This document shows, in pieces, positions 8,333-57,728 of a stretch of 64,000 nucleotides of DNA. Numbering within the stretch: position 1 is the stretch's first letter; each line of letters begins with the position of its first letter. The stretch lies in NCBI GenBank assembly GCA_009859145.1, contig VRVR01000038.1, positions 1 through 64,000 on the forward strand, in the 5' to 3' direction. The DNA is from Andalucia godoyi And28. Lineage: Eukaryota > Protista > Jakobida. The position numbers were made by a program, and so were the translations under genes. The notes under the pieces were generated by a model. The model saw only the letters and a program-made list of their open reading frames with translations. It was not told the origin of the DNA and made no database searches.

Positions 8333-8596
8333 GAAAGAAATACAGCGAAATGGCACACGCTCACGAACGCTCCTCGGACGTTTCGGAATTCAGCACTTGC
8401 GGGGGAAGGGCGAAGAATTTGGCTGTGCATCGGGAATGCCGATTCTTCTGTGCGTCGTCAGAAGGAGAAAACAACAATCGAGCATTTACATCTGCCGGAC
8501 ATTTGAAGATGCGGTTCCTGGACGTTGATTGCGATTTTCATGCTGTATTTTATGTAACCCTCCAGACCAAACGTCTGGTGGACGGCTGTGAATATC

Positions 8597-8953
8597 ATCG
8601 GATAGTACAGCTGAGTTTGGCAGTCGTCGACGTCGCTGTTGAATGAAGGCCGACCTTTTTCTTCTGCCGATTGTTGCTACTGATTGCAGTCGTCGTTGTT
8701 GCGGTCGTTGTCGCAGCGGCGTACGTGTGCAGGTCGAGGCCCAATGAGACGCTGTCGAACATTGAGAGCCGCATTCTTGTCTCGGGACTTCCAGCGCCGA
8801 GCCGTGCAATGGGCGGATTCACAGCATCGCAAACCGCCCCTCCCGGAGATGATGGCTTCTCTCCTCCCGCTTGTTGGATCTGCGTGAGAACCTGCCGGGC
8901 ACAAGCCTCTTCGACAGACAACACTTGACAGCCGATTCCTTGTAATCGATGAT
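8597..8953 (-). mobile_element. Fanzor/TnpB 3'-end relic, family B copy 1 (Zn-finger and RuvC-III remnant plus putative omegaRNA tail)
   Basis: Minus frame reads GRGGLRCCESAHCTARRWKSRDKNAALNVRQRLIGPRPAHVRR (RDKNAALNV at 8784-8758). Homologous to 28696-28876. Confidence 0.65.
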
Positions 8954-8966
8954 TCCTCCGCCGCGG

Positions 8967-8968
<2 letters not shown>

Positions 8969-9045
<77 letters not shown>
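8969..9045. repeat. (CT)n microsatellite, about 38 units
   Basis: Direct reading; abuts the family B element. Confidence 0.95.
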
Positions 9046-9047
<2 letters not shown>

Positions 9048-9674
9048 GTGGTGCACACCATTGTCAATCAACAATCAATGCAATATCGGCTCGATTGAAA
9101 ACAGAGAAGGAAAGATCGAGAGAGAGGAAGAACAAGTGGATTAAGAATGCGGAATGGCAATAAATGAAGCTCGTTGAGAATCGCAAGTTTTTTCCTGGTT
9201 CCCAGGGTCCAAGTGGTTCAAACGAATGCACTAATTGATCTAGTAGAGAGCTCTGAACAGGAAAATAGGTTGTTCCTGCTTTGGGGTGAGCAGACCCACG
9301 GATGTCCCACTCAAAAAAGAACTTTCATTGGATTGGCGCTGATGCTGATTGTAAAAGTCCCTTTACGCCAAATAATCTGCTTGAGGCGCAGCATGCGGGC
9401 TAAATTTTTGGAGAGGTTTTGGGTTGAAGGGCAATATCCTGTTTGTTTTATTTTGTGTTAACGTTGTTTTCGGTTGGCATCTCGTCTGAAGTCCCTCCAA
9501 GGAAAGACAGCACCAAGTTCGTTGTTGTAGTTCTAGTAGCAGTAGAAGAGGAAGAAGGACAAAAATCAAAATCAAAAAAATTGAAACAAAAAAACAAAAA
9601 GAAAAAAGAAAAAAGAAAAAAATAGATAGTATTGTGGTGTTTGTTGGTTTGCAGCTGCTTGTCATTTCTGGAGA

Positions 9675-10715
9675 ATGAGCGGCACTGCATTTCCGATTGC
9701 GCCGATTTTCCACAGAACAGAATCGTCCCCGACGGATCTTTTTCACAAGAGGTATCTGCTGAATGAGTTCATCAATCCGTACACTCGGATAGTGTATGGA
9801 GTGGACAAATCGAGGGGCGTTGGTGCGTCTTCGAACACGGCGTCCCGGATCGCAGTCCTGGTCTTTGACGAAGCTGCGGCGTACGAGTCCTCTGTCAAGC
9901 TGTTTCAAAAATTGCGCTCCAAGTTTGTTACCAACATGACGGATCATTGGGAAGAGTTTGCAGAGTGTGGTCGTGCGTTTCTTGTTATTGAGCGCGGTGG
10001 CCTTGCTCTTGACGAGTATGCATATTCGATACGCAAGGAGCTTCATCCTCGAGATGTCGGTCTCAAGCACGACTGTTTGATGCATATTGCTCTTGTGTGG
10101 GCATTCATCTTCAATGCGGGCTATTCTTTGCATTTTTCGCAGACGTGCTTCATGCAGTTTGGAACCGTGTGGAAGTTGTACGACCCATCGTGTCTGACGC
10201 ATGGAAGACGCGCCGTTATGAACCGACTGTATGTACCCTTCGAGGTAGCTTCGCTCATTGCCAATGGCCATGTTTCTGCTTTTACGTACTCTCCCCCGGA
10301 CGTTGCTGGAAATCCCGGAGGCGCCAGCCACTCTCTTGAAATGGTTCAACTGGGATACGATACCGACGGTCGAGCGTCCGTGGTACCGAGCATGATGACG
10401 TTCGGGATGCTGCTGCTTGAGCTACTGCTACTTCATCCGCTGTTCGCAGAGAAGAGCATCGAAGAGATTTACGGAGCCGTGGCAAACCAGCAATGCGTCC
10501 CGCAGCTCCGCCAAGCCGGTATACTGACGAAGGAAGAGCTTGTCGTCGTGCAGCTTGTGCAGCATATTCTCATGCATGATGACTCGTCCGATCGCATGGA
10601 AGACGTCGCGAGCGTCATGATACTGGTTACGGACGTCCTGAACGACAAATGCCAGCAATCCTTCAAGAAGTCCACAAGTCCCAAAAAGCCAATTTTTGTG
10701 CCTGCCGTAAATTAA
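9675..10715 (+). CDS. Protein-kinase-like fold protein, probable pseudokinase
   Basis: AFLVIERGGLALDEY (hinge-like), HIALVWAFIFNAG, WKLYDP at the DFG position, TFGMLLLELL. No GxGxxG, HRD or DFG. Confidence 0.55.
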   Translation: MSGTAFPIAPIFHRTESSPTDLFHKRYLLNEFINPYTRIVYGVDKSRGVGASSNTASRIAVLVFDEAAAYESSVKLFQKLRSKFVTNMTDHWEEFAECGRAFLVIERGGLALDEYAYSIRKELHPRDVGLKHDCLMHIALVWAFIFNAGYSLHFSQTCFMQFGTVWKLYDPSCLTHGRRAVMNRLYVPFEVASLIANGHVSAFTYSPPDVAGNPGGASHSLEMVQLGYDTDGRASVVPSMMTFGMLLLELLLLHPLFAEKSIEEIYGAVANQQCVPQLRQAGILTKEELVVVQLVQHILMHDDSSDRMEDVASVMILVTDVLNDKCQQSFKKSTSPKKPIFVPAVN

Positions 10716-11689: not shown

Positions 11690-14191
11690 ATGAGTGGCCG
11701 ATCGCCTCTTCGATCAAGCGCCCGCAGCCCCGCCGCCGTTCAGCCTGTGCAGTGGCTCTTTAACGTTCTTCATCCTATATATGCCGAGTTCATTAGCCTG
11801 CCTTCCGACTCGCTGGTTGAGTATCTTTCCCGTACCATTGCATTTCAGTTTGGTTCCGAGGCGGTGGAAGAGATCTTGGGTGCTTTTGACATTTCGCTAT
11901 CGATCAACCGACATTCGAATTGGGAACTGGCCGTCGTCTCGAGGTTCCATCAGGGAGAATACGACATTTCCGGGTATCTGTTCTTTACATTCGGGAAGCA
12001 GTTGCTCGCAAAACGTTCTCCGTCGGGATCACTCAGAAAGGACCACGTGTTCATCAAGGCGTTTGCAAAGGATTGGTTCTCCATGCTCGGAAGAATCGAT
12101 GCAGCAAAAGTTGCAACTGTATTTTCAACCCGATTCATCACTACCGACATGAAAGTGATCGATCTGTTTGTCACGGGGATTGCGCTCTTCTATGACGTTT
12201 GGAGACAAACGAACATTGTGGATTTTGAGGCACTTAAGGATCGAGTATGCGTCCGAAATCCTTCCAGAAAGACCCGCTCGATATCTCCCAGTCCGCAGCG
12301 CGTGGTATCGTCCATTTCAACCCCGCCCCCGAATGCCTCCGCATCGCCGATCACCAGGTCCAGAACACCGACTGTTTGTTACCGTTCGCCAAGCACTCCG
12401 TCCCCTACTTCTTCCCAGCGAGCATCTGTAGATTCAAATGCTTCTTCGTCTGCCAATTCGGCAGCTGCCTTGGCAACTGGCTTGGGCATTCAGAATTGTG
12501 TCGAGTGGTGGGAGCTGTATGCCGGAGTAACTCCGCCTCCTACGATGTCCCTGGAAGACCGGATCGATAATATCATTCGATACTATGCTTCGAAACCCGG
12601 AGTTGCCGCAAAGGGCCTCCATCGTGCGAATCAGACTGATCATCCGGGAGCGTGTGACATACAGACGCAGTGCGCTTATGAGTCCATGAAGCTGGCAGAG
12701 TTTTCCACGCAGACTGCGCATGCAGCCGTTTGCGATGCGATGGTGGGGACTGCTCCCCGCTCCGTCGTGCACCAGCATCTGGGTCCTGATTCTGCTGGCG
12801 CCTTTGACGCCTCCACCCATACGTACGGGCTCGTGCAGTTTCTTGAAAAGTCAGTCAGCTGTCGAGCACCCATTCAATCTCTAGAAGTCCAAACAGACGC
12901 GCTGGAAGCTGCAGAAACTGGCATTTCGGCGGTTGTTGGCTCCCGCGACGTGGGTTGCGATCCCGAGATCAGGAATCTGGTGGCTCCTGATACTCCGGAC
13001 CTCACAACAAAAATAGATGCATTTGATAGAGGTTTGCAGACAGATTTCGTAGAAAAGGACTATTCCAATTTGAAATCCATCGGCGTCACTACCGTTTCGC
13101 CGGGGATGGTGGATGAAGGAGTCATTGCACGTCCACAAGTCAAGGAGAGCGCAATGAATGCTGCTGCCCAAGCGTTGCCAGCATCGTCTGGGACAGAGGA
13201 CTTGTGTTCGTGCATTCTCATGGAGCGGGACCGCGTGTCGTCCATTGAGCAGTTTAGTGATAGTATGCTGGCATTCTCGACAGCATCAGACAAGAGACTA
13301 GAAATGCTGTCGTCGCGGATCGACCGCTTCCAACTCCTTCTGACTCGCGGACTCACCAATCTCTTTTTCAAGGTCGCCCGGGAGCGCGAGTTGTACATTC
13401 AGAGTATTCACACCATCTCAAAGGAGTTGCAATCGGAACGCGACTCCTTTGATCGAAGCAAGAAGCTCGCATTTCATCATCTCCAGGAGCTCAAATCAAG
13501 TTGCGATGCGGAAATCGAGCGTCTGGGATCCAAGCTTTCCGAGGTGTCCTCCAAACTTGCGGACGCGCATCGGAAGGGCGAGGGGCTCGAAGCGCAAATT
13601 CAGAGATTGAAACCCGGCGGAGAAGATTTCTTAGCCTCGATGGAGATCGAAATGCGGCGACAAAAGTTGCGAGCTTGCCGACTTTGTGATGTCAAGCGGT
13701 TGGTGGCGCTGCGCTGTCTTTCCTCCGCGACCGCCTCCTCCAATTCTTCAAATCCAAACGTTGTGTTGAGCGCTCCGCAAATTGAGGACTTGGCCCTGTT
13801 CTTCACAATTTCTGATATGGGCTCAGATCTGCGATCTTTCTTTTACAAGTCCGAGGTGGTACGCGGTTCGCGCGCACCGCAGTGGAAAGAGATCCCACTG
13901 AATTCGTTGAGCGGAAATGATGGACAAGCGGCTTCGTTTTTGGTTCGCATTTTCGATTCAAAGAAGCTTGTTCCTCGGAGGGAGGCTTTGGTATCAGAGC
14001 AATGGATCAACCTTGCTTCGTTGACACCATACTCGTCTGAGAAGGATTATTTTGACAAGGAATCGATCACTAAGAACGTCGAAGAAGATTCGGAGAAACG
14101 AGCATTGGAAAGCGGTCTGGTGCGGTACCATCTGGTGTTGCTAACCATTGGAAATCAAATTTATTACTGTCCGCTTCTCACCAGTTCGTAA
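11690..14191 (+). CDS. 833-aa protein with a Ser/Pro-rich region, repeated xxQT-like motifs, coiled coil and C-terminal UVRAG-like C2 domain
   Basis: Long open ORF. C-terminal LFFTIS..FFYKSEVVRGSRAPQW..FLVRIFD resembles the UVRAG/Vps38 C2 domain. Confidence 0.7.
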   Translation: MSGRSPLRSSARSPAAVQPVQWLFNVLHPIYAEFISLPSDSLVEYLSRTIAFQFGSEAVEEILGAFDISLSINRHSNWELAVVSRFHQGEYDISGYLFFTFGKQLLAKRSPSGSLRKDHVFIKAFAKDWFSMLGRIDAAKVATVFSTRFITTDMKVIDLFVTGIALFYDVWRQTNIVDFEALKDRVCVRNPSRKTRSISPSPQRVVSSISTPPPNASASPITRSRTPTVCYRSPSTPSPTSSQRASVDSNASSSANSAAALATGLGIQNCVEWWELYAGVTPPPTMSLEDRIDNIIRYYASKPGVAAKGLHRANQTDHPGACDIQTQCAYESMKLAEFSTQTAHAAVCDAMVGTAPRSVVHQHLGPDSAGAFDASTHTYGLVQFLEKSVSCRAPIQSLEVQTDALEAAETGISAVVGSRDVGCDPEIRNLVAPDTPDLTTKIDAFDRGLQTDFVEKDYSNLKSIGVTTVSPGMVDEGVIARPQVKESAMNAAAQALPASSGTEDLCSCILMERDRVSSIEQFSDSMLAFSTASDKRLEMLSSRIDRFQLLLTRGLTNLFFKVARERELYIQSIHTISKELQSERDSFDRSKKLAFHHLQELKSSCDAEIERLGSKLSEVSSKLADAHRKGEGLEAQIQRLKPGGEDFLASMEIEMRRQKLRACRLCDVKRLVALRCLSSATASSNSSNPNVVLSAPQIEDLALFFTISDMGSDLRSFFYKSEVVRGSRAPQWKEIPLNSLSGNDGQAASFLVRIFDSKKLVPRREALVSEQWINLASLTPYSSEKDYFDKESITKNVEEDSEKRALESGLVRYHLVLLTIGNQIYYCPLLTSS

Positions 14192-14205: not shown

Positions 14206-14374
14206 CCGTTGCCACTTATTGCGATATGATGAAGCAATCTAAAGCGCACGTAAAAACAAAAACACACTGCCACGCGCCAAGCGCCTGCGCTTGTCATCTT
14301 AAGCAACTCCGTCACACGATGCCGGATTCGTTTCGCCCCATTTTGATCATGAAACTCCTATACACACGCCGCCG
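14206..14374 (-). mobile_element. Dispersed ~170-bp structured repeat, family E copy 1 (possible TnpB/Fanzor 3' end with omegaRNA)
   Basis: Clearly aligns with 57556-57728. Hairpin CAAGCGC-CT-GCGCTTG; minus frame FHDQNGAKRIRHR. Confidence 0.5.
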
Positions 14375-16978: not shown

Positions 16979-17051
16979 ACCCGGTTAGCTCAGTCGGTAG
17001 AGCATGAGACTCTTAATCTCAGGGTCGTGGGTTCGACCCCCACATTGGGTG
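16979..17051 (+). tRNA. tRNA-Lys (anticodon CTT)
   Basis: 73 nt; acceptor stem ACCCGGT/ATTGGGT; anticodon arm TGAGA-CTCTTAA-TCTCA; T arm GTGGG-TTCGACC-CCCAC; downstream T6 Pol III terminator. Confidence 0.97.
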
Positions 17052-28104: not shown

Positions 28105-28695
28105 GCGTCGCCTGCTGTACATGACAGCAACAACAAACAAAAACACGGTGTGCTGCACTGACAAGTCATCGGTTGCAGAATGACAATCCCCCTTCTTTCC
28201 AGCAGAGCGAGGCTCTGGGTATAAAAGGATCGCGGTTTCGCTTTTCTTCTCTTTTCCTATTTCTCTTCCTTCCTTTTTCTTTTTCTTATTTCACAAAAGT
28301 CGATCGGGGCTCGATTAGAGTCGCGTACCCTCCCTTTGATGGAGGAGGCCGTGCTTAGAGCCCCGTAGACACGCGGAATGCTTATTTGTCTTGCCGACTG
28401 GATTGATCTCGGCAAGAGCACTCGGCAGTCCTACAAACAAAAGCTAAAACATCTCGTATAATTTTCAACCAAAAAAAAAAAAAAAAAAGGCACCTAAAAC
28501 ACGAAACTTTTGGTAACTCTATAAACTGGCCAGAACCTCCATTCTTTCAATCGCCATTCACGAGCCAACCCGTCACACAAATCACGACGCTCTGCAAACT
28601 AGCTCATTCTCATTTCCAAAGGAAGTGCCACCGTCCTTTGTCTCGCATGCTGCGCCCCAAACAGATTATTTGGCGTAAAGTGACTTTTACAATCC

Positions 28696-28876
28696 ATCAT
28701 CGATTACAAGGAATCGATTGTCAGTATCCGACAGTGTCTCTCATTGGGTCTCGACCTGCACACCTATGCCGCCGCACCAACAACAGCAACCGATAGCAGC
28801 AATCTGCAGAGGGAAAAGGGTCGGCCTGCATTCAACAGCGACGTCGACGACCGCCAACTCAGCCATCCCATCCGAT
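28696..28876 (+). mobile_element. Family B copy 2, internally deleted (about 170 bp missing) derivative retaining the 3' structured tail
   Basis: Shares ATCATCGATTACAAGGAATCG and the block CTCATTGGG.CTCGACCTGCACAC..CATTCAACAGCGACGTCGACGA..CTCAGC..ATCCGAT with the reverse complement of 8597-8953. Confidence 0.7.
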
Positions 28877-44763: not shown

Positions 44764-45358
44764 CGCCTACAGTATACACTGAACATGCATAACTACGAAT
44801 AGACATGCGTATTCAATCTGGCATCCCGTTGCCGGGAAGGGGATCGGCCCCAACACACCTCACGGCGCTCTTCAGATAGATGTTCCGCGCTCCGTTCCCA
44901 ATCTCGATCAATCGGTGAGCCACTTTCTCAGCATGACACGTTGCTCCTGAGAAGGGGTGCATTTTGATTCTGACGGCCCTAGCAGCAGGCGCTTTCGTGT
45001 CCTCAGTTGCAGCGATTGATGCACCTGGAGATACGAGAGGAAGAGGCGGTAGGCGTAGTGACACGTGGTCTCTTAGGAGGTCTGCGGGACCTAGGAGGCC
45101 CTGTATCGAGCGGAGTAGGCGTAGGCGAATGCGTCATCGCAGCGCACCCATGCCCATATTTGAATTAAAAAAGTGAAGCCAAAAAACCAAACCAACGAAT
45201 GATAGAATAGATGGCTACGGATGCTACATTAAAGAGTGTCGAAAATGCAGAGCCTGTGTCACCGGCTGAATTTTGGCCGAGCGTGCGTAAGCACGAATTC
45301 CTGTGAAACAAAACGTGCTAGTGTCGGTCAGTATCGACCGTGTCTGTTTATGTATACT
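44764..45358 (-). mobile_element. Miniature internally deleted Fanzor2/TnpB-like element, family D copy A
   Basis: Inverted near-identical copy of 50385-50966. Encodes RAVRIKMHP / SQEQRVMLRKWL and IDRDW/NGARNIYLKS, broken by frameshifts. Confidence 0.75.
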
Positions 45359-45565
45359 TCCTTCCGTATGCATGACAATGACGTGTTATTATATAATTCA
45401 ACGGTTTTTTTTTTGTTGGTTTTTTCTTTCTTTTTTGTCCGACGATAGGTTTTCTAGAAGAGAAAACGACGCGAGACGACAGACTAAGGACCGATTGTTG
45501 GAGAGGTGATTTGTGAACTGCGATCGGTAAGTGCTACAACAGGACTGCGAGGAGGGAAGGACGAT

Positions 45566-47398
45566 ATGGCGCGTGCATTTGGCTTGCGTACACACAGGCG
45601 TGGGCTTGGGCTTGGGCTTGTGTTCGCCTGTCTGTGCGCGCTTCGACTCGATTGTGCGTTGGGGGACTGTTTTGCGACGAATTTACGAGCGTTTGATATG
45701 TATGTGCCGGCGACTGCGATGAATCTTTGCCTGACGCCCGCGTCGAACTGCTCTCACATCTCCTTTGTGATTGAACACGATGGGAAATCCAAAAGCGGTG
45801 CTCGTCGTGTGCACGGAGAGGAGGCGCCGTCGGGGTTCACGCAGATAGCGTCTGGTACGTGGACCGACTGCTTGAACACCACAGGCTGGACACAGTTTTC
45901 CTTCACTTCGTTGCCGAATGTTCCGCCCCGTCTGCAGTCTCTTGCAGCGGGGTATGCAGAAGGTGTGCTGGCGCAGGAGAAGATCTGGAGCTATGCGCGA
46001 AATGCATACACGGTCGTCTTTGGGAACAAGACTGCGCATTTTACGTACCCGGCTAAGCTGGAGGCGTTTCTTCATGAGCACTACGCGTACTTGGAGAAGC
46101 AGATTGCGGATTTTGCAACGGAAGACGTGTCGGGATACTGGGCGCAAATCCAGCTGTTGAATGATCAGATGGAGGGGCTGTTGGAAGGCTACATGTCGGC
46201 TGCTGCAGTGGATCAAGCGCTGACGTGGATGGACTTTTTGATTCTGCAGTTGAATGGAGACTTGGACCAGCTTATTCCCGTCTGTGCGCAGGACTTGGAG
46301 CTCATCAAGACGAAAGGAAGCTCGAGAAATGGAAATCTCCTTAGCAGGAAGGAAGCGTTTGAACGAATTTCGGTCTCCAGATGCTCCGCCATTGTGAAGC
46401 TGACTGCAGATTTCTCAGAACTCTACACCGCACACACAACATGGGGCTCTTATTCCGTGATGTTGCGAACGTTCAAGCAGTACAACTTTGCATTTAACGG
46501 AGTTGCGTCGAACAAAATGGCCTTGTCGTCATATCCAGGAGTCATTGCGTCAGTCGACGACTTCTATGCGATGCCGGACTCGAAACTGGCTGTGACAGAA
46601 ACGACAAACGACATCTTGAATGACGACCTGCTGGACAAAATCACCAAGGATTCTGTAATGTACTGGATGAGAGTCATGGTTGCGTGTCGTCTTGCTTCCA
46701 ATACCGAGGAGTGGACCACGACGTTTGCACAGTCCAACTCCGGAACCTACAATAATCAGTGGATTGTGGTCGACTACAAGCTCTTCACCCCCGGACAGTC
46801 TCTCGCTGCTGGTGCTGTTCGGATTTTGGAACAGATTCCAGGAGACACCGCGTCATTGGATGTCACATCGTATGTGGTCCAAGGGCATTGGGCATCGTAC
46901 AACCGCCCGTTCTTCCCACAGTTCTTCGAAGCTCTCGGCTACCCAAAGTACGCCGCCACGTACGGAGACATTTACTCGTACGCGGCATGTCCTCGAGCTG
47001 AAATTTTCAGACGCGATGCGGACTCTATTGCATCTCTGCACGACACCAAAAAGTTTATTGTGTACAATAACTTCAAGGTGGATCCGCTGTCGTCTGGATA
47101 TCCAGGAAACTCGATTGCGGCCCGTTTTGATCTCAAAGGAGGCCCATTTGACGACTCTGGTCTGAATTGGTTTTACCATGGTTTGCATGGCGGTATTGAC
47201 GGAAAGGTTGTCTCAAACGAATTGATGCAGGATGGGTCTGTGCATGCCATATCTGGTCCGACGCACGACGATGTGCCTCCATTTGTATGGAGCGCTGAAT
47301 GGGACTGGGCTCCGCATGAGGGCCTTCCCAGCGTCTATGACTTTGATTGGGTCCATTTCAAGAGCGACGGTTCGGCAGAAGTGCTGCAGCACTCGTAG
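45566..47398 (+). CDS. Phospholipase B-like protein (PLBD, Ntn hydrolase)
   Basis: Signal peptide; RCSAIVKL..ELYTAHTTW, SSYPG..SVDDFY, TETT, NSGTYNNQW, EQIPG, WASYNRPF, PRAEIFRRD. Confidence 0.92.
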   Translation: MARAFGLRTHRRGLGLGLVFACLCALRLDCALGDCFATNLRAFDMYVPATAMNLCLTPASNCSHISFVIEHDGKSKSGARRVHGEEAPSGFTQIASGTWTDCLNTTGWTQFSFTSLPNVPPRLQSLAAGYAEGVLAQEKIWSYARNAYTVVFGNKTAHFTYPAKLEAFLHEHYAYLEKQIADFATEDVSGYWAQIQLLNDQMEGLLEGYMSAAAVDQALTWMDFLILQLNGDLDQLIPVCAQDLELIKTKGSSRNGNLLSRKEAFERISVSRCSAIVKLTADFSELYTAHTTWGSYSVMLRTFKQYNFAFNGVASNKMALSSYPGVIASVDDFYAMPDSKLAVTETTNDILNDDLLDKITKDSVMYWMRVMVACRLASNTEEWTTTFAQSNSGTYNNQWIVVDYKLFTPGQSLAAGAVRILEQIPGDTASLDVTSYVVQGHWASYNRPFFPQFFEALGYPKYAATYGDIYSYAACPRAEIFRRDADSIASLHDTKKFIVYNNFKVDPLSSGYPGNSIAARFDLKGGPFDDSGLNWFYHGLHGGIDGKVVSNELMQDGSVHAISGPTHDDVPPFVWSAEWDWAPHEGLPSVYDFDWVHFKSDGSAEVLQHS

Positions 47399-47559: not shown

Positions 47560-50151
47560 TCACCATCCTGTGCCAAACGTATGGTGAGGTGTATGGCGAG
47601 TGACAGGATTTGCATTTTCATACGAACCCGGTCCGGGAATCTTCTTGCGGGCCTCAAAATCGAGGTCCTTCAGATGGTCACCGAAGGTGTACCGCGGAGA
47701 AGACTTCCCTGTCCCTGACGGCGGTCTGTATTTCGGACCCGGAGACTCGGAGACGCCCTTCATCGGGATCGGACGTCCGAATCGTGGGGCAAGTGAAACT
47801 GGTGTGATCGGCGGTGTCTGGCGATTCCTGGAAGACCGAGAGGTTCCGCTGCCATGTGAGGCCACGGAAGACGCTGTTCCGTGATCGGATGAAAATTCTG
47901 CAAGTCGGTCGGCTTTGTCCGACAGGATAACAGATAAGCGATACGAGGATGATCCAACGGATCCAGGACGTTGATGGGCACTTGAAGACGTCAGCACAGC
48001 CGGCTCCTGCTCATCTGAATGGTCATGCGAGTCAATTGTATGTGCACGACGGCGAGTGGGCGGAAGACCGGAGGCTGAGGAGGTCCGTGGACGCAAATCT
48101 CGCGAAGGCGGAACTTCACTGAGCGTCTCGTGAGGTTGCGACGCGGCGATTTCCGGGCGTCCTGCAGAAATAGGATGCCCAGAAGAGGAGCGCAAGGCTG
48201 TTATCGATTTCGAATAGCTTCGCTCCGTTAAAATACTAAGTTCTTCAGGGGAGGTGTTCAGCGTTCCCGTGTAGTAGCGAGCCAGGAAGGACCGAAAAGC
48301 AAGAGACGTCCCAGTGTGTTCTTTTGTAAGAATCGGGCCGGACTCGAAATTGATGGATGCCTGGAACTTGGCCATCGATTTCAAGCGGCCCAATACGGAG
48401 CTCTCTTCGGGGTGCTGCTTGAACACTTTTGTTCGTTGCTTGGGCTTGGTCGAGGACGCAGGAGTGGCAACAGAGGACGACGACGACGATGATGATGATG
48501 ATGACGATGACTTTGCAGGAGGCAACGAAAGCCGAGGAACGACTGATGGCAATCCTTTGGTCGATGGAGGATTGGACATCTTTTTTGCATGAGACGGAGG
48601 CGGAATGCGGGCATTCCAACTTGGTCTCGTTGGACTTGGATGACTTTGCATCTTTTTCTTGGGCTTCTTGGGTACTCCATTTGGTTTCATTGCAGTGCTC
48701 GTGTTTGGAGAAGCGGTCGATGTGGACTTTTTCCCTTTCCGCTTTCGTCCTGGACCAGAGGCTGATGGATGAGCTGAGGACGCTGTGGCGTCGTTCTCCC
48801 AACCGTGGACCGACTGGGCTTCGCTCCCTGCATATCTATACCCATCGTCGTCGTCGTCGTCGTCGACAACGTTACCGTCTTTCGCAATGCAAACACTATT
48901 CTCCAAATCTGCAATCTCTTCAGCACATCCAGGTTGGCTGTCTTCATTCTGCCCATCAACCTCGATTGCATTTGTCTCTTCCACCTCTTTATATTCCTCT
49001 TCCTGCTCTTCCTGCTCTTCCTGCTCTTCCTGCTCTTCCTGCTCTTCCTGCTCTTCCACATCTTCCACATCTTCCACCTCTTCCACCTCTTCCACCTCTT
49101 CCACCTCTTCCACCTCTTCCACCTCTTCCACCTCTTCCACCTCTTCCACCTCTTCCACCTCTTCCACCTCTTCCACCTCTTCCTGCTCTCCTGCGCCTTC
49201 TTGGTTTTCTGGATGGTCAACATCGATGTGCGGATCTATCGACACCTCGCTTCTGGTGAACTCGCGCTCCTCTGCTTCTGCAACACACGAAGAGCCATTT
49301 GCATCGGCTGGGCTATCCGAGTATTCATCCCATTCTTTGGCACCCAGCAAAGACCTTGCCACAGCTGGATTCTCCGCCACTTCACTCGACTGCTGATCAT
49401 CGGCTTTCTCCTCGTCGCCTCGCTGCACCTTCTCATCGAAACCACTTTCGTCGCTGTCCTTTTCAAACTCATCTTGGCCATACTCCCCGCAGGCATCGGA
49501 AGCTTGCGGATCGTCCGTATCCGCTGCAGTGGGGTCTACATCCACTGTCGAGTCAAACTCGTATCCATCATCGTTGCCAGCTCCCAGACTCATATCAGAA
49601 CCTGCATCCTCAAAAATGAAATCCGGAGACTCTGTTCCATCGGTTCGAAGGCCGTCCTCCGCATCATCCTGGCCACTCGTCGTCAGCAAAGATGCTCCTG
49701 CCTCGTCAGAACCAGTCAATACCACAGCGTCATGGCTATGCATGCTACGATTGCTGCAATCGCTGGTTTCATCATACTCGGCAGGAAGAGAGGCATCCAA
49801 CTGCGGTGACTCGCCGAGATGATGCTGGCCCGCCCAATCATCATTACTACTTGTCAATTGAAAATCAAAACGCTCCAACCCCGACGCCGACGATGCCGCA
49901 GAAGTTTCGTTGCACGGAACATCCGGCTGGCTCAGCTGACTTGACGGAGCAAGAAACATGAAAGCGGAGGCGGGTCTCGAGTCCCAAAAGGCATGGCTAT
50001 CCGACTCCATCGAATCACCTAAATCTGCATCGTTGTCCCCAACCGAAAAGTCAAGTTCGTCCGAACCAAGCATTGCCGATCCATGCGAAGCAGGTCGGCT
50101 CTCATCCAACCCATCGGTGGCCTCCACCAGTGGCTCACGTGCATCCTCCAT
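47560..50151 (-). CDS. Long acidic low-complexity protein with EEV/EEQ repeats and C-terminal PGP (Shippo/STPG-like) motifs
   Basis: Continuous ORF; SESPGPKY and KKIPGPGSY near the C-terminus. Confidence 0.7.
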   Translation of the reverse strand: MEDAREPLVEATDGLDESRPASHGSAMLGSDELDFSVGDNDADLGDSMESDSHAFWDSRPASAFMFLAPSSQLSQPDVPCNETSAASSASGLERFDFQLTSSNDDWAGQHHLGESPQLDASLPAEYDETSDCSNRSMHSHDAVVLTGSDEAGASLLTTSGQDDAEDGLRTDGTESPDFIFEDAGSDMSLGAGNDDGYEFDSTVDVDPTAADTDDPQASDACGEYGQDEFEKDSDESGFDEKVQRGDEEKADDQQSSEVAENPAVARSLLGAKEWDEYSDSPADANGSSCVAEAEEREFTRSEVSIDPHIDVDHPENQEGAGEQEEVEEVEEVEEVEEVEEVEEVEEVEEVEEVEEVEEVEDVEDVEEQEEQEEQEEQEEQEEQEEEYKEVEETNAIEVDGQNEDSQPGCAEEIADLENSVCIAKDGNVVDDDDDDDGYRYAGSEAQSVHGWENDATASSAHPSASGPGRKRKGKKSTSTASPNTSTAMKPNGVPKKPKKKMQSHPSPTRPSWNARIPPPSHAKKMSNPPSTKGLPSVVPRLSLPPAKSSSSSSSSSSSSSVATPASSTKPKQRTKVFKQHPEESSVLGRLKSMAKFQASINFESGPILTKEHTGTSLAFRSFLARYYTGTLNTSPEELSILTERSYSKSITALRSSSGHPISAGRPEIAASQPHETLSEVPPSRDLRPRTSSASGLPPTRRRAHTIDSHDHSDEQEPAVLTSSSAHQRPGSVGSSSYRLSVILSDKADRLAEFSSDHGTASSVASHGSGTSRSSRNRQTPPITPVSLAPRFGRPIPMKGVSESPGPKYRPPSGTGKSSPRYTFGDHLKDLDFEARKKIPGPGSYENANPVTRHTPHHTFGTGW
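48998..49186. repeat. 9-bp coding minisatellites (TCTTCCTGC)n and (TCTTCCACC)n encoding (EEQ)n and (EEV)n
   Basis: Direct reading. Confidence 0.92.
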
Positions 50152-50384
50152 AGGCAATAATCAATTACAATACGCAACGCGCGAACGAAATGTGTGTCTG
50201 TGTGTGTGTGTGTGTGTGAAAAGTGAGATTCAGGTTTGGTTAGGGACCAAACATTTGCACGAGGTGCTTGGCAAGTGGAGGAGTGGGGACGTAGAGGAAT
50301 GGAGAACAGTGCTTTTCTTTCAATAGGGCTGCAGTATGATGATGATGATGATACTGCTGATTTGCACGGTTCCTAAAAAAATTC

Positions 50385-50966
50385 AGTATCCATAAACAGA
50401 CACGGTCAATACTGGCCGACACCAGCACGTTTGTTTCACAGGGGAATTCGTGCTTACGCACGCTCGGCCGAAATTCAGCCGGTGACACAGGCTCTGCATT
50501 TTCGACACTCTTTAATGTAGCATCCGTAGCCATCTATTCTATCATTCGTTGGTTTGGTTTTTTGGCTTCACTTTTTTAATTCAAATATGGGCATGGGTGC
50601 GCTGCGATGACGCATTCGCCCACGCCTACGCCGATCGATGCAGGGCCTCCTAGGTCCCGCAGACCTCCTAAGAGACCGCCTCTTCCTACTCTCGTATCTC
50701 CAGGTGCATCAATCGCTGCAACTGAGGACACGAAAGCGCCTGCTGCTAGGGCCGTCAGAAATCAAAATGCACCCTTCTCAGGAGCAACGTGTCATGCTGA
50801 GAAAGTGGCTCACCGATTGATCGAGATTGGGAACGGAGCGCGGAGCATCTATCTGAAGAGCGCCGTGAGGTGTGTTGGGGGGCCGATCCCCTTCCCGGCA
50901 ACGGGATGCCAGATTGAATACGCATGTCTATTCGTAGTTATGCATGTTCAGTGTATAATGTAGGCG
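50385..50966 (+). mobile_element. Miniature internally deleted Fanzor2/TnpB-like element, family D copy B
   Basis: ATG near 50607; IKMHPSQEQRVMLRKWL at 50761-50811 abuts ATT GAT CGA GAT TGG (G) AAC GGA GCG at 50816. Hairpins at 50893-50906 and 50922-50943. Confidence 0.75.
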
Positions 50967-57555: not shown

Positions 57556-57728
57556 CCGCTGTCACTTATTGCGGTATGATGAAGGAATCTAAAGCGCACG
57601 TAAACAAAAACACTGCCACGCGCCATGCGCATGCGCATGTGTTTGCTATCTTCACAGCTCCGTCCACACGATGCCCGATTCGTTTCGTCCCATTTTGGTC
57701 ATGAAATCCCTATATAAATACGCCGCCG
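57556..57728 (-). mobile_element. Dispersed ~170-bp structured repeat, family E copy 2
   Basis: Aligns to 14206-14374. Hairpin CATGCGC-AT-GCGCATG; minus frame FHDQNGTKRIGHR. Confidence 0.5.

Follow-up and report, generated by a model that had tools for sequence, protein, structure and literature searches.

Within the first 64 kb of scaffold VRVR01000038.1 of the jakobid Andalucia godoyi (assembly GCA_009859145.1), a stretch referred to below as the window, a sharply bounded short repeat, called here family B, was found in two copies by self-BLAST and pairwise alignments. An earlier note had read the longer copy as encoding, on the minus strand, a Fanzor1-type C-terminus (zinc finger plus RuvC-III) followed by a tail proposed to be an omegaRNA. 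Our analysis suggests, tentatively and at somewhat less than an even chance, that family B consists of two decayed copies of a lineage-specific unit bearing an open reading frame (ORF), in which the Fanzor motif would be an out-of-frame coincidence. This reading is preferred because of the phase of the substitutions between the copies, the ATG and stop codon lying at the limits of homology, and codon usage, all weighed against how rare the motif is and how sharply the repeat ends. The lack of support for Fanzor homology in curated profiles and large databases was also counted in its favour.

Structure of family B and constraint on its reading frames

Copy 2 lacks approximately 387 bp and 160 bp of copy 1 and differs from it further by indels of +2, -15, +1 and -1 nt. 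The features of the repeat are given below, where frame 0 is the frame of the Fanzor-like peptide and frame +1 is the frame one base downstream of it.

8597-9397, minus strand: copy 1 (long), between the outermost bases in common with copy 2
28644-28876, plus strand: copy 2 (short), delimited by self-BLAST and pairwise alignments
9337-9397, minus strand: 5' block common to both copies, pairing with 28644-28702 at 90% identity
8955-9336, minus strand: insert of about 387 bp found in copy 1 only, with stops in the ATG frame and a (GA)n microsatellite at about 8969-9045
8926-8954, minus strand: block M, common to both copies (8953-8926 aligned with 28696-28723)
8766-8925, minus strand: segment found in copy 1 only, encoding most of the Fanzor-like peptide in frame 0
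8597-8765, minus strand: tail common to both copies, the proposed omegaRNA, pairing with 28721-28876 at 76% identity
8595-9074, minus strand: frame +1 ORF of 159 codons, open across blocks M to IV, with its TGA at 8597-8595
8841-8725, minus strand: Fanzor-like peptide RGGLRCCESAHCTARRWKSRDKNAALNVRQRLIGPRPAH, frame 0
8758-8784, minus strand: RDKNAALNV, RuvC-III-like motif, frame 0
8677-8679, minus strand: TAG stop of frame 0, kept in both copies
8650-8737, minus strand: span of the proposed pairing of TCGACCT (8737-8731) with AGGTCGG (8656-8650), invariant in both copies

The substitutions separating the two copies follow frame +1. Within block I (8749-8698), seven of the eight changes fall at third positions of frame +1, which are first positions of the peptide frame, with spacings in multiples of three, and none falls at a third position of the peptide frame. 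The sequence SLGLDLHTYAAA is unchanged between the copies despite five substitutions over its 12 codons. Read in frame +1, block I (SLGLDLHTYAAATTTA vs SLGLDLHTYAAAPTTA) and block III (KKVGLHSTATSTTA vs KRVGLHSTATSTTA) each differ by a single residue, and 9 of the 13 substitutions in blocks M, I and III combined are at frame +1 third positions (binomial p 0.009). The Nei-Gojobori method applied to all ungapped blocks gave a pN/pS ratio of 0.32 for frame +1 (Fisher p 0.0037), compared to 1.03 for the peptide frame and 1.49 for the third frame. No phase bias was seen in the two control families, namely the other repeats of the window (8/8/8 and 7/5/4), which contain stops in all frames.

The limits of homology coincide with a possible start and a stop. 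An ATG is located 3 nt inside the 5' limit (9394-9392, and 28647-28649 in copy 2) and opens a frame reading MLR[L/P]KQIIWRK[G/V]TFTI, while the frame +1 TGA straddles the 3' limit. Block M translates in frame +1 as [N/H]HRLQGI[G/D]CQ, and in copy 2 the ATG frame continues directly into HHRLQGIDCQ, the counterpart of NHRLQGIGCQ in frame +1 of copy 1.

Regarding codon usage, a classifier trained on 27 window ORFs taken as genes, which retrieved the correct frame in 227 of 247 gene windows, chose frame +1 both in the segment specific to copy 1 and in the tail. In the low-complexity stretch RRCDNDRNNDDCN, the third position of the peptide frame is C in 12 of 13 codons, whereas the host uses GAC, AAC and TGC at only 45-57% and its synonymous usage is nearly even; the peptide frame of this stretch therefore does not look coding. 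In frame +1, the same bases do look coding, following an R-C-N pattern of Ala/Thr codons with free third positions.

Both ends of the repeat were then delimited by comparing the 200-nt flanks beyond them, in which similarity was no better than that of shuffled sequences; the 3' boundary at 8597, proposed in the earlier note, is therefore sharp. Neither terminal inverted repeats nor a target-site duplication were found at the ends of family B. Five of the 7 nt just outside the 5' limit are the same in both copies (TTTAGCC in the 9385-9420 region of copy 1 and TTTGTCT in the 28621-28656 region of copy 2), which could be either slight extra homology or a common target motif, two copies being unable to define a target-adjacent motif. 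Exon boundaries were rejected as the cause of the sharp ends, AG/GT not being present at both copies. Scans of viral and metagenome contigs for further copies with 23-mers and 19-mers gave nothing or chance matches of 19-24 nt.

The second copy on which the note relied does exist at 28644-28876, but it lacks the ~160 nt (8925-8766) encoding most of the peptide. This segment is flanked in copy 1 by imperfect direct repeats of 23-24 nt (ACAAGGAATCGGCTGTCAAGTGTT at 8943-8920 and ACAAGAATGCGGCTCTCAATGTT at 8780-8758), whose score was equalled in 6 of 500 shuffles, and because these repeats bound the segment that it lacks, copy 2 resembles a deletion derivative. Tandem duplication was discarded as the source of the segment, of which only the 23-nt ends resemble each other. 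The ~387-bp piece specific to copy 1 may have been inserted or may be an intron; the frame of copy 1 would be held open only if a weak GT donor at 9322 (GTTCTT) were used together with AG acceptors of the GA tract. It should be noted that indels associated with homopolymers are located at 8663/8662 and 8618 in copy 1 and at 28737-28738 and 28811 in copy 2, and that some of the frameshifts may be sequencing errors, the assembly being 454-based.

From these data we infer that frame +1 has been translated and that the Fanzor-like motif is coincidental. The common sequence would be a present or recent small coding unit without known relatives, running in frame +1 from the ATG at 9394 (28647 in copy 2) to the TGA at 8597-8595 and specifying a product of about 135-170 residues (MLRLKQIIWRKGTFTI..HRLQGIGCQVLSVEEACARQ...SLGLDLHTYAAATTTATTTTAISSNNRQKKKVGLHSTATSTTAKLSCTIR). 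Copy 2 would be dead, having suffered the ~160-nt deletion between the 23-nt direct repeats as well as frameshifting indels, and copy 1, broken by the 387-bp insert with its (GA)n microsatellite, would also be dead or else dependent on splicing. The tail would have been conserved by past purifying selection on codons and not by RNA structure, and the Fanzor-like motif would have appeared out of frame within a translation rich in Arg, Cys and Gly.

Resemblance of the copy 1 peptide to Fanzor1 C-termini

The intergenic minus-strand peptide described in the note is present, in a frame open from stop to stop over 9063-8680, and its RD-x-NAA-x-N-[IV] motif is real, with a single occurrence (8784-8758) in the six-frame translation of the whole window. 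The note had also counted about 190 nt between peptide and homology end; this distance holds if counted from the RD codons, but only 80 nt separate the stop of the peptide frame from the 3' boundary. Copy 2 does not encode residues 1-28 of the peptide, among which are both Cys clusters and RDKNAALN, and only LIG[P/S]RPAH is common to the two copies.

The C-terminal module of Fanzor1 and TnpB consists of a zinc ribbon and RuvC-III (Pfam PF07282, 'Cas12f1-like TNB'; Bao and Jurka 2013, PMC3627910). Like this module, the peptide presents a Cys pair, about 23 residues, G-x-L-R-C-x4-C, W-x-x-RD-x-NAA-x-N-V and then P-R-P..RR, and it is located near the 3' end of a sharp-ended repeated element. Unlike it, the first Cys pair of the locus is C-x4-C instead of C-x2-C, the locus is devoid of a significant curated-profile match, DE-x-x-TS, RuvC-I/II, REC and inverted-repeat ends, and its peptide frame shows no coding constraint, the common tail being constrained in another frame. 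The arrangement SSVVC-x4-C-x23-CC-x4-C-x7-RD fits the Fanzor/TnpB pattern [TS][TS]-x-x-[C4 zinc finger]-X(5,50)-RD reported by Bao and Jurka 2013 (PMC3627910), a match that was made post hoc and with a first pair that is not C-x2-C. Only RD is present from the RuvC triad (RuvC-I Asp, RuvC-II Glu within (D/E)E-x-x-TS, RuvC-III RD); the residues ahead of the first Cys are NRLSSVV, without any Glu, and the (D/E)E-x-x-TS-x-x-C-x-x-C hallmark is absent. A full-length ORF is absent, the locus offering at most about 90 codons, and a 495-position Fanzor1 profile detected nothing Fanzor-like upstream of the peptide in any frame. Other Fanzor-like snippets (VPGRFSRR and IIDYKES) occur at the locus in other frames and in the wrong order, so that such motif fragments arise easily there.

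Homology searches with the peptide gave no family at E<=10 in Pfam (including PF07282 and PF26935) and NCBIfam, no chain of the TnpB/Fanzor/Cas12 family among PDB sequences, and no TnpB among the tblastn matches to phage genomes. A word-indexed search of 5.8 billion protein clusters returned no match to the peptide at E<=10, and an exhaustive HMMER search of 1.84 billion representatives returned no Fanzor parent or relative of it, the protein collection searched containing almost no A. godoyi genes. By contrast, all six genuine Fanzor1 C-terminal fragments used as a positive control (92-129 residues, taken from supplementary file 3 of Bao and Jurka 2013) matched PF07282, five of them at E<=0.032; they did so mostly through a VDE-x-x-TS-x-x-C-x-x-C stretch which the window peptide does not have. 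Andalucia does not appear in the portion of the Fanzor supplements of PMC10432273 covered here.

The sole match of the exhaustive search, P0001 (E 7e-5), is an unrelated tandem-repeat ORF in which TGA is read as Trp and was treated as chance: it has no similarity at the DNA level, two repeats contribute to its summed score, and the protein is no Fanzor. This ORF is located on a 989-kb contig of 45% GC (ENA ERZ25073789, contig ctg148978, L002 10001-10528) and adjoins a tRNA-like T-arm sequence, GGTTCAAATCTC.

Custom profiles were also built. A profile of 15 published Fanzor1 C-termini ranked the target fragment 10th (E 4.3), and, with 78 fungal and metagenomic Fanzor1 proteins retrieved for this purpose, profiles of 39, 25 and 14 C-termini gave best domains of 8.0, 10.4 and 5.6 bits, respectively. 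The translation of the (GA)n tract, ERERER, lowers the HMMER scores of the neighbouring peptide through bias correction; once the microsatellite translation was trimmed, the fungal profile of 25 sequences reached 11.8 bits, with a calibrated p of 0.033. In 240 simulated windows, the chance level was 10.4 bits in 10% and 11.8 bits in 3.3%. The best pairwise phmmer match had an E of 0.012 over a colinear alignment of 76 residues with the pattern C..G[IL]C / P..RR / GL.RC / C / W..RD.N.A.N / RP...R.D, and HHalign against the 25-protein alignment gave a probability of 14.5% (P 0.0019, 47 columns, 34% identity). A chimera of frame 0 and frame +1 that scored higher with the Fanzor profile was set aside, its gain coming from low-complexity S/K/T matches of low posterior probability. 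Single-sequence AlphaFold models of the two frames were uninformative (pLDDT 41 and 36.5).

By these comparisons the locus is the most Fanzor-like fragment of the window, yet the resemblance is only marginal statistically, and none of the Fanzor tests can be taken as significant because several profiles were tried and the locus had been chosen for its motif. The assignment to a Fanzor1-type C-terminus is thus borne out as regards the motif, the repeat and the top rank among Fanzor1-like fragments of the window, but not as regards curated profiles, none of which matched, or RuvC-I/II, which are missing.

Folding of the common tail

The position of the tail fits that of an omegaRNA, but its sequence does not behave as a structured RNA, and this part of the note is not upheld. 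The tail folds no better than shuffled sequence: the minimum free energy (MFE) z-scores were +1.1 and +0.7 for the two tails, and +0.5 and +0.4 for the whole of copy 2 on either strand. Both strands of the proposed pairing of TCGACCT with AGGTCGG are indeed present in both copies, but this pairing is kept only through invariance; when the helix is extended, one G-U change and no compensatory change are observed between the copies. The consensus fold contains one long-range helix (GGGCC..CGACC with GGUCGGCC), invariant except for G-C to G-U changes, and RNAalifold reported two compensatory pairs only, both in short local stems outside the named helix. Furthermore, the putative scaffold contains indels of 15, 2 and 1 nt between the copies, and its substitutions are 3-periodic.

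A search of Rfam at E<=10 over 8450-9450 gave nothing but microsatellite-driven noise. A known non-coding RNA (U1 snRNA or SRP RNA), considered from an AUUGCAC-like stretch, was rejected, Rfam giving no support. The (GA)n microsatellite, of about 38 units (8969-9045), faces a CT-rich tract (9103-9132) about 60 nt away in a hairpin-like arrangement, and this pair yields spurious sub-threshold microRNA matches in Rfam.

Competing readings and genomic setting

Several observations weigh against two decayed copies of a coding unit read in frame +1. The analysis relies on two copies and approximately 26 substitutions; once the three frames are allowed for, the p value of the selection signal is about 0.01-0.02, and part of this signal comes from the triplet-periodic Ala/Thr stretch. 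The classifier margins for frame +1 are 0.09-0.11, compared to a gene mean of 0.24 +/- 0.19. No relative of the frame +1 protein was found in Pfam, PDB or the protein databases, the structure predicted from its sequence alone has a low confidence (pLDDT 36.5), and both copies are disrupted in their present form. In addition, synonymous divergence is only about 0.25, a level at which the flanks of a duplicated gene should still align, yet they do not, and a mobile unit would therefore fit better than a plain gene duplicate. Finally, the RD-x-NAA-x-N-[IV] motif, even in a relaxed form or in a form with two upstream Cys pairs, was found in none of 400 windows simulated with a second-order Markov model, and phmmer searches of 1687 six-frame fragments with 54 Fanzor1 C-terminus queries placed the locus first for 5 of them and among the five best for 12.

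The last two observations speak for a dead relic of a TnpB/Fanzor-type mobile element, with nothing functional now, which we consider possible although rather unlikely. Copy 1 would then retain the last 60-90 codons of a longer element (second half of the zinc ribbon plus RuvC-III) together with its right end, and copy 2 would be an ORF-less 'ghost' deletion derivative. Such a relic would also be consistent with the fit to the pattern of Bao and Jurka, the colinear phmmer alignment at E 0.012, the 11.8 bits of the trimmed fungal profile (p 0.033), the pairwise HHalign P of 0.0019, the sharp ends without target-site duplication, and the frame 0 stop kept in both copies 80 nt from the right end. 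For Fanzor1, derivatives that have lost the ORF have been documented: the 'ghost' Spu-1 elements retain the Fanzor1 transposon ends (Saito et al. 2023, PMC10432273), and copy 2 similarly has the 5' and 3' parts but not the middle of copy 1. In a variant of this scenario, copy 1 would have lost 2 nt at 8750/8749 and the ancestral ORF would have run from ...RDKNAALNVRQ into the frame +1 sequence SLGLDLHTY..., as in copy 2, where the extra bases 28737-28738 would join the upstream peptide frame to the downstream frame +1, reading IRQCLSLGLDLHTY; this variant is compatible with the frame +1 signal (pN/pS 0.30). Against a relic stand the failure of PF07282, PF26935, NCBIfam and PDB to match at E<=10 when 6/6 true fragments match PF07282, the HHalign probability of only 14.5%, profile scores equalled in 3-10% of random windows after several profiles had been tried, and a test that is not independent of the selection of the locus. 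The DE-x-x-TS-x-x-C-x-x-C stretch is absent, the upstream sequence is not Fanzor-like, and VPGRFSRR and IIDYKES lie in other frames and out of order. No parent or relative emerged from the exhaustive search of 1.84 billion representatives, and terminal inverted repeats are absent, unlike at the SpuFz1 loci; whereas the Spu-1 ghosts are known by the inverted repeats they have in common with ORF-bearing loci, family B has neither inverted repeats nor an ORF-bearing parent. The peptide frame itself shows a pN/pS of 1.03, with 0/8 of the block I changes at its third positions, and codon usage in the segment encoding the peptide favours frame +1.

A non-coding dispersed repeat, be it like a miniature inverted-repeat transposable element (MITE), another short mobile element or a regulatory module, would make chance events of both the motif and the codon-like pattern, and seems to us improbable, more so than a relic. 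Family B resembles MITEs and other short non-autonomous DNA elements in being short, dispersed, intergenic in both copies, sharp at both ends and related through an internal deletion; stops are scarce in the region whatever the frame, so that open frames carry little weight, neither frame has a database relative, and both statistical signals are modest, the periodicity lying partly in a triplet-repeat-like stretch. Yet the synonymous excess in a single frame (p 0.004) is not seen in the two control families, an ATG and a stop lie at the homology limits, there is no stable fold and no Rfam family, and, unlike MITEs, family B, of which only two copies were seen, has no terminal inverted repeats or target-site duplications. 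A live OMEGA-type system, in which the tail would be a functional omegaRNA guiding a Fanzor encoded elsewhere in the genome, has next to no probability in our view, and an active Fanzor/omegaRNA pair at the locus is very unlikely: the common tail, its sharp end at 8597 and one conserved long-range helix would suit it, but the MFE z-scores (+1.1, +0.7 and +0.5), the compensatory pairs confined to short local stems outside the named helix, the 15-, 2- and 1-nt indels within the putative scaffold and the 3-periodic substitutions argue against it. Neither the covered portion of the supplements of PMC10432273 nor the protein searches, in a collection nearly devoid of A. godoyi genes, provided an Andalucia Fanzor or a Fanzor-like protein, respectively. 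The favoured reading as decayed coding copies matches an orphan small gene with its decayed paralogue in its start and stop at the homology limits, its synonymous excess and host-like codon usage in the same frame, and it recalls a gene and pseudogene pair in that one copy is disabled by frameshifts and by a deletion between short direct repeats; it departs from such a pair in having no homologue, in the interruption of both copies and in flanks that do not align at a synonymous divergence of ~0.25.

If the coding reading is true, family B would be an orphan small ORF or pseudogene pair that escaped annotation in a very compact genome, and its interest would be limited to local annotation. If instead it were, as we think doubtful, an eroded trace of the TnpB/Fanzor lineage, with copy 1 as the long relic and copy 2 as a ghost without an ORF, it would be the first sign of an OMEGA-type element in Jakobida and would extend the host range of Fanzor/TnpB to jakobids, Fanzor in Discoba being documented so far only in Naegleria (Heterolobosea) in the covered part of PMC10432273. 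The parent of such a relic would be extinct or would lie in the subtelomeric 'transposon/viral-like' scaffolds that were omitted from the published, 454-based assembly (PMC7050145), and it would be worth recovering from unassembled reads; even then, the locus would be a dead fragment offering no usable nuclease or guide. Regarding method, a catalytic motif of textbook form may still be in the wrong frame even when it lies in an open frame of a sharp-ended repeat, and the test that told most was that of substitution phase, with no more than two copies to compare.

The nuclear genome of A. godoyi (VRVR00000000) is about 20 Mb, compact and intron-poor, with intergenic spacers of 44-691 nt (mean 217) (PMC7050145). 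A trypanosomatid source, first suspected from the GA and polypyrimidine tracts, was rejected, the eL22 protein of the window matching A. godoyi scaffold VRVR01000038.1 exactly. Copy 1 is intergenic, between a gene for a Bmt2-type rRNA methyltransferase (8356-7451, minus strand) and an unnamed ORF (9675-10715, plus strand), and copy 2 is likewise intergenic, between a small unnamed ORF (end 28104) and the PSMD3/Rpn3 gene (ATG 29150). The placement of both copies about 265-275 bp upstream of a gene on the same strand was not considered telling, this distance being within the published spacer range and the downstream genes being unrelated. Although base 1 of the window is base 1 of the scaffold, no telomere-type repeat was found over positions 1-240. 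At gathering score, Rfam matches the window only at a tRNA-Lys(CTT) gene (16979-17051).

Two other repeat families are present in the window. An inverted pair of 600-bp copies, 94% identical (44764-45358 and 50385-50966), flanks about 5 kb containing a phospholipase-B-like gene (45506-47398, plus strand) and an unnamed ORF of 865 aa (47560-50157, minus strand). No frame of these copies is free of stops, and they show no codon-phase bias; the first one reads GNGARNIY at 44899-44876 on the minus strand, a partial RuvC-III-like string without RD. The third family (14206-14374 and 57556-57728; 178 bp, 83% identical, same orientation) is non-coding, with substitution phases of 8/8/8, and its first copy begins 15 bp past the stop of an 833-aa ORF at 11690-14191.

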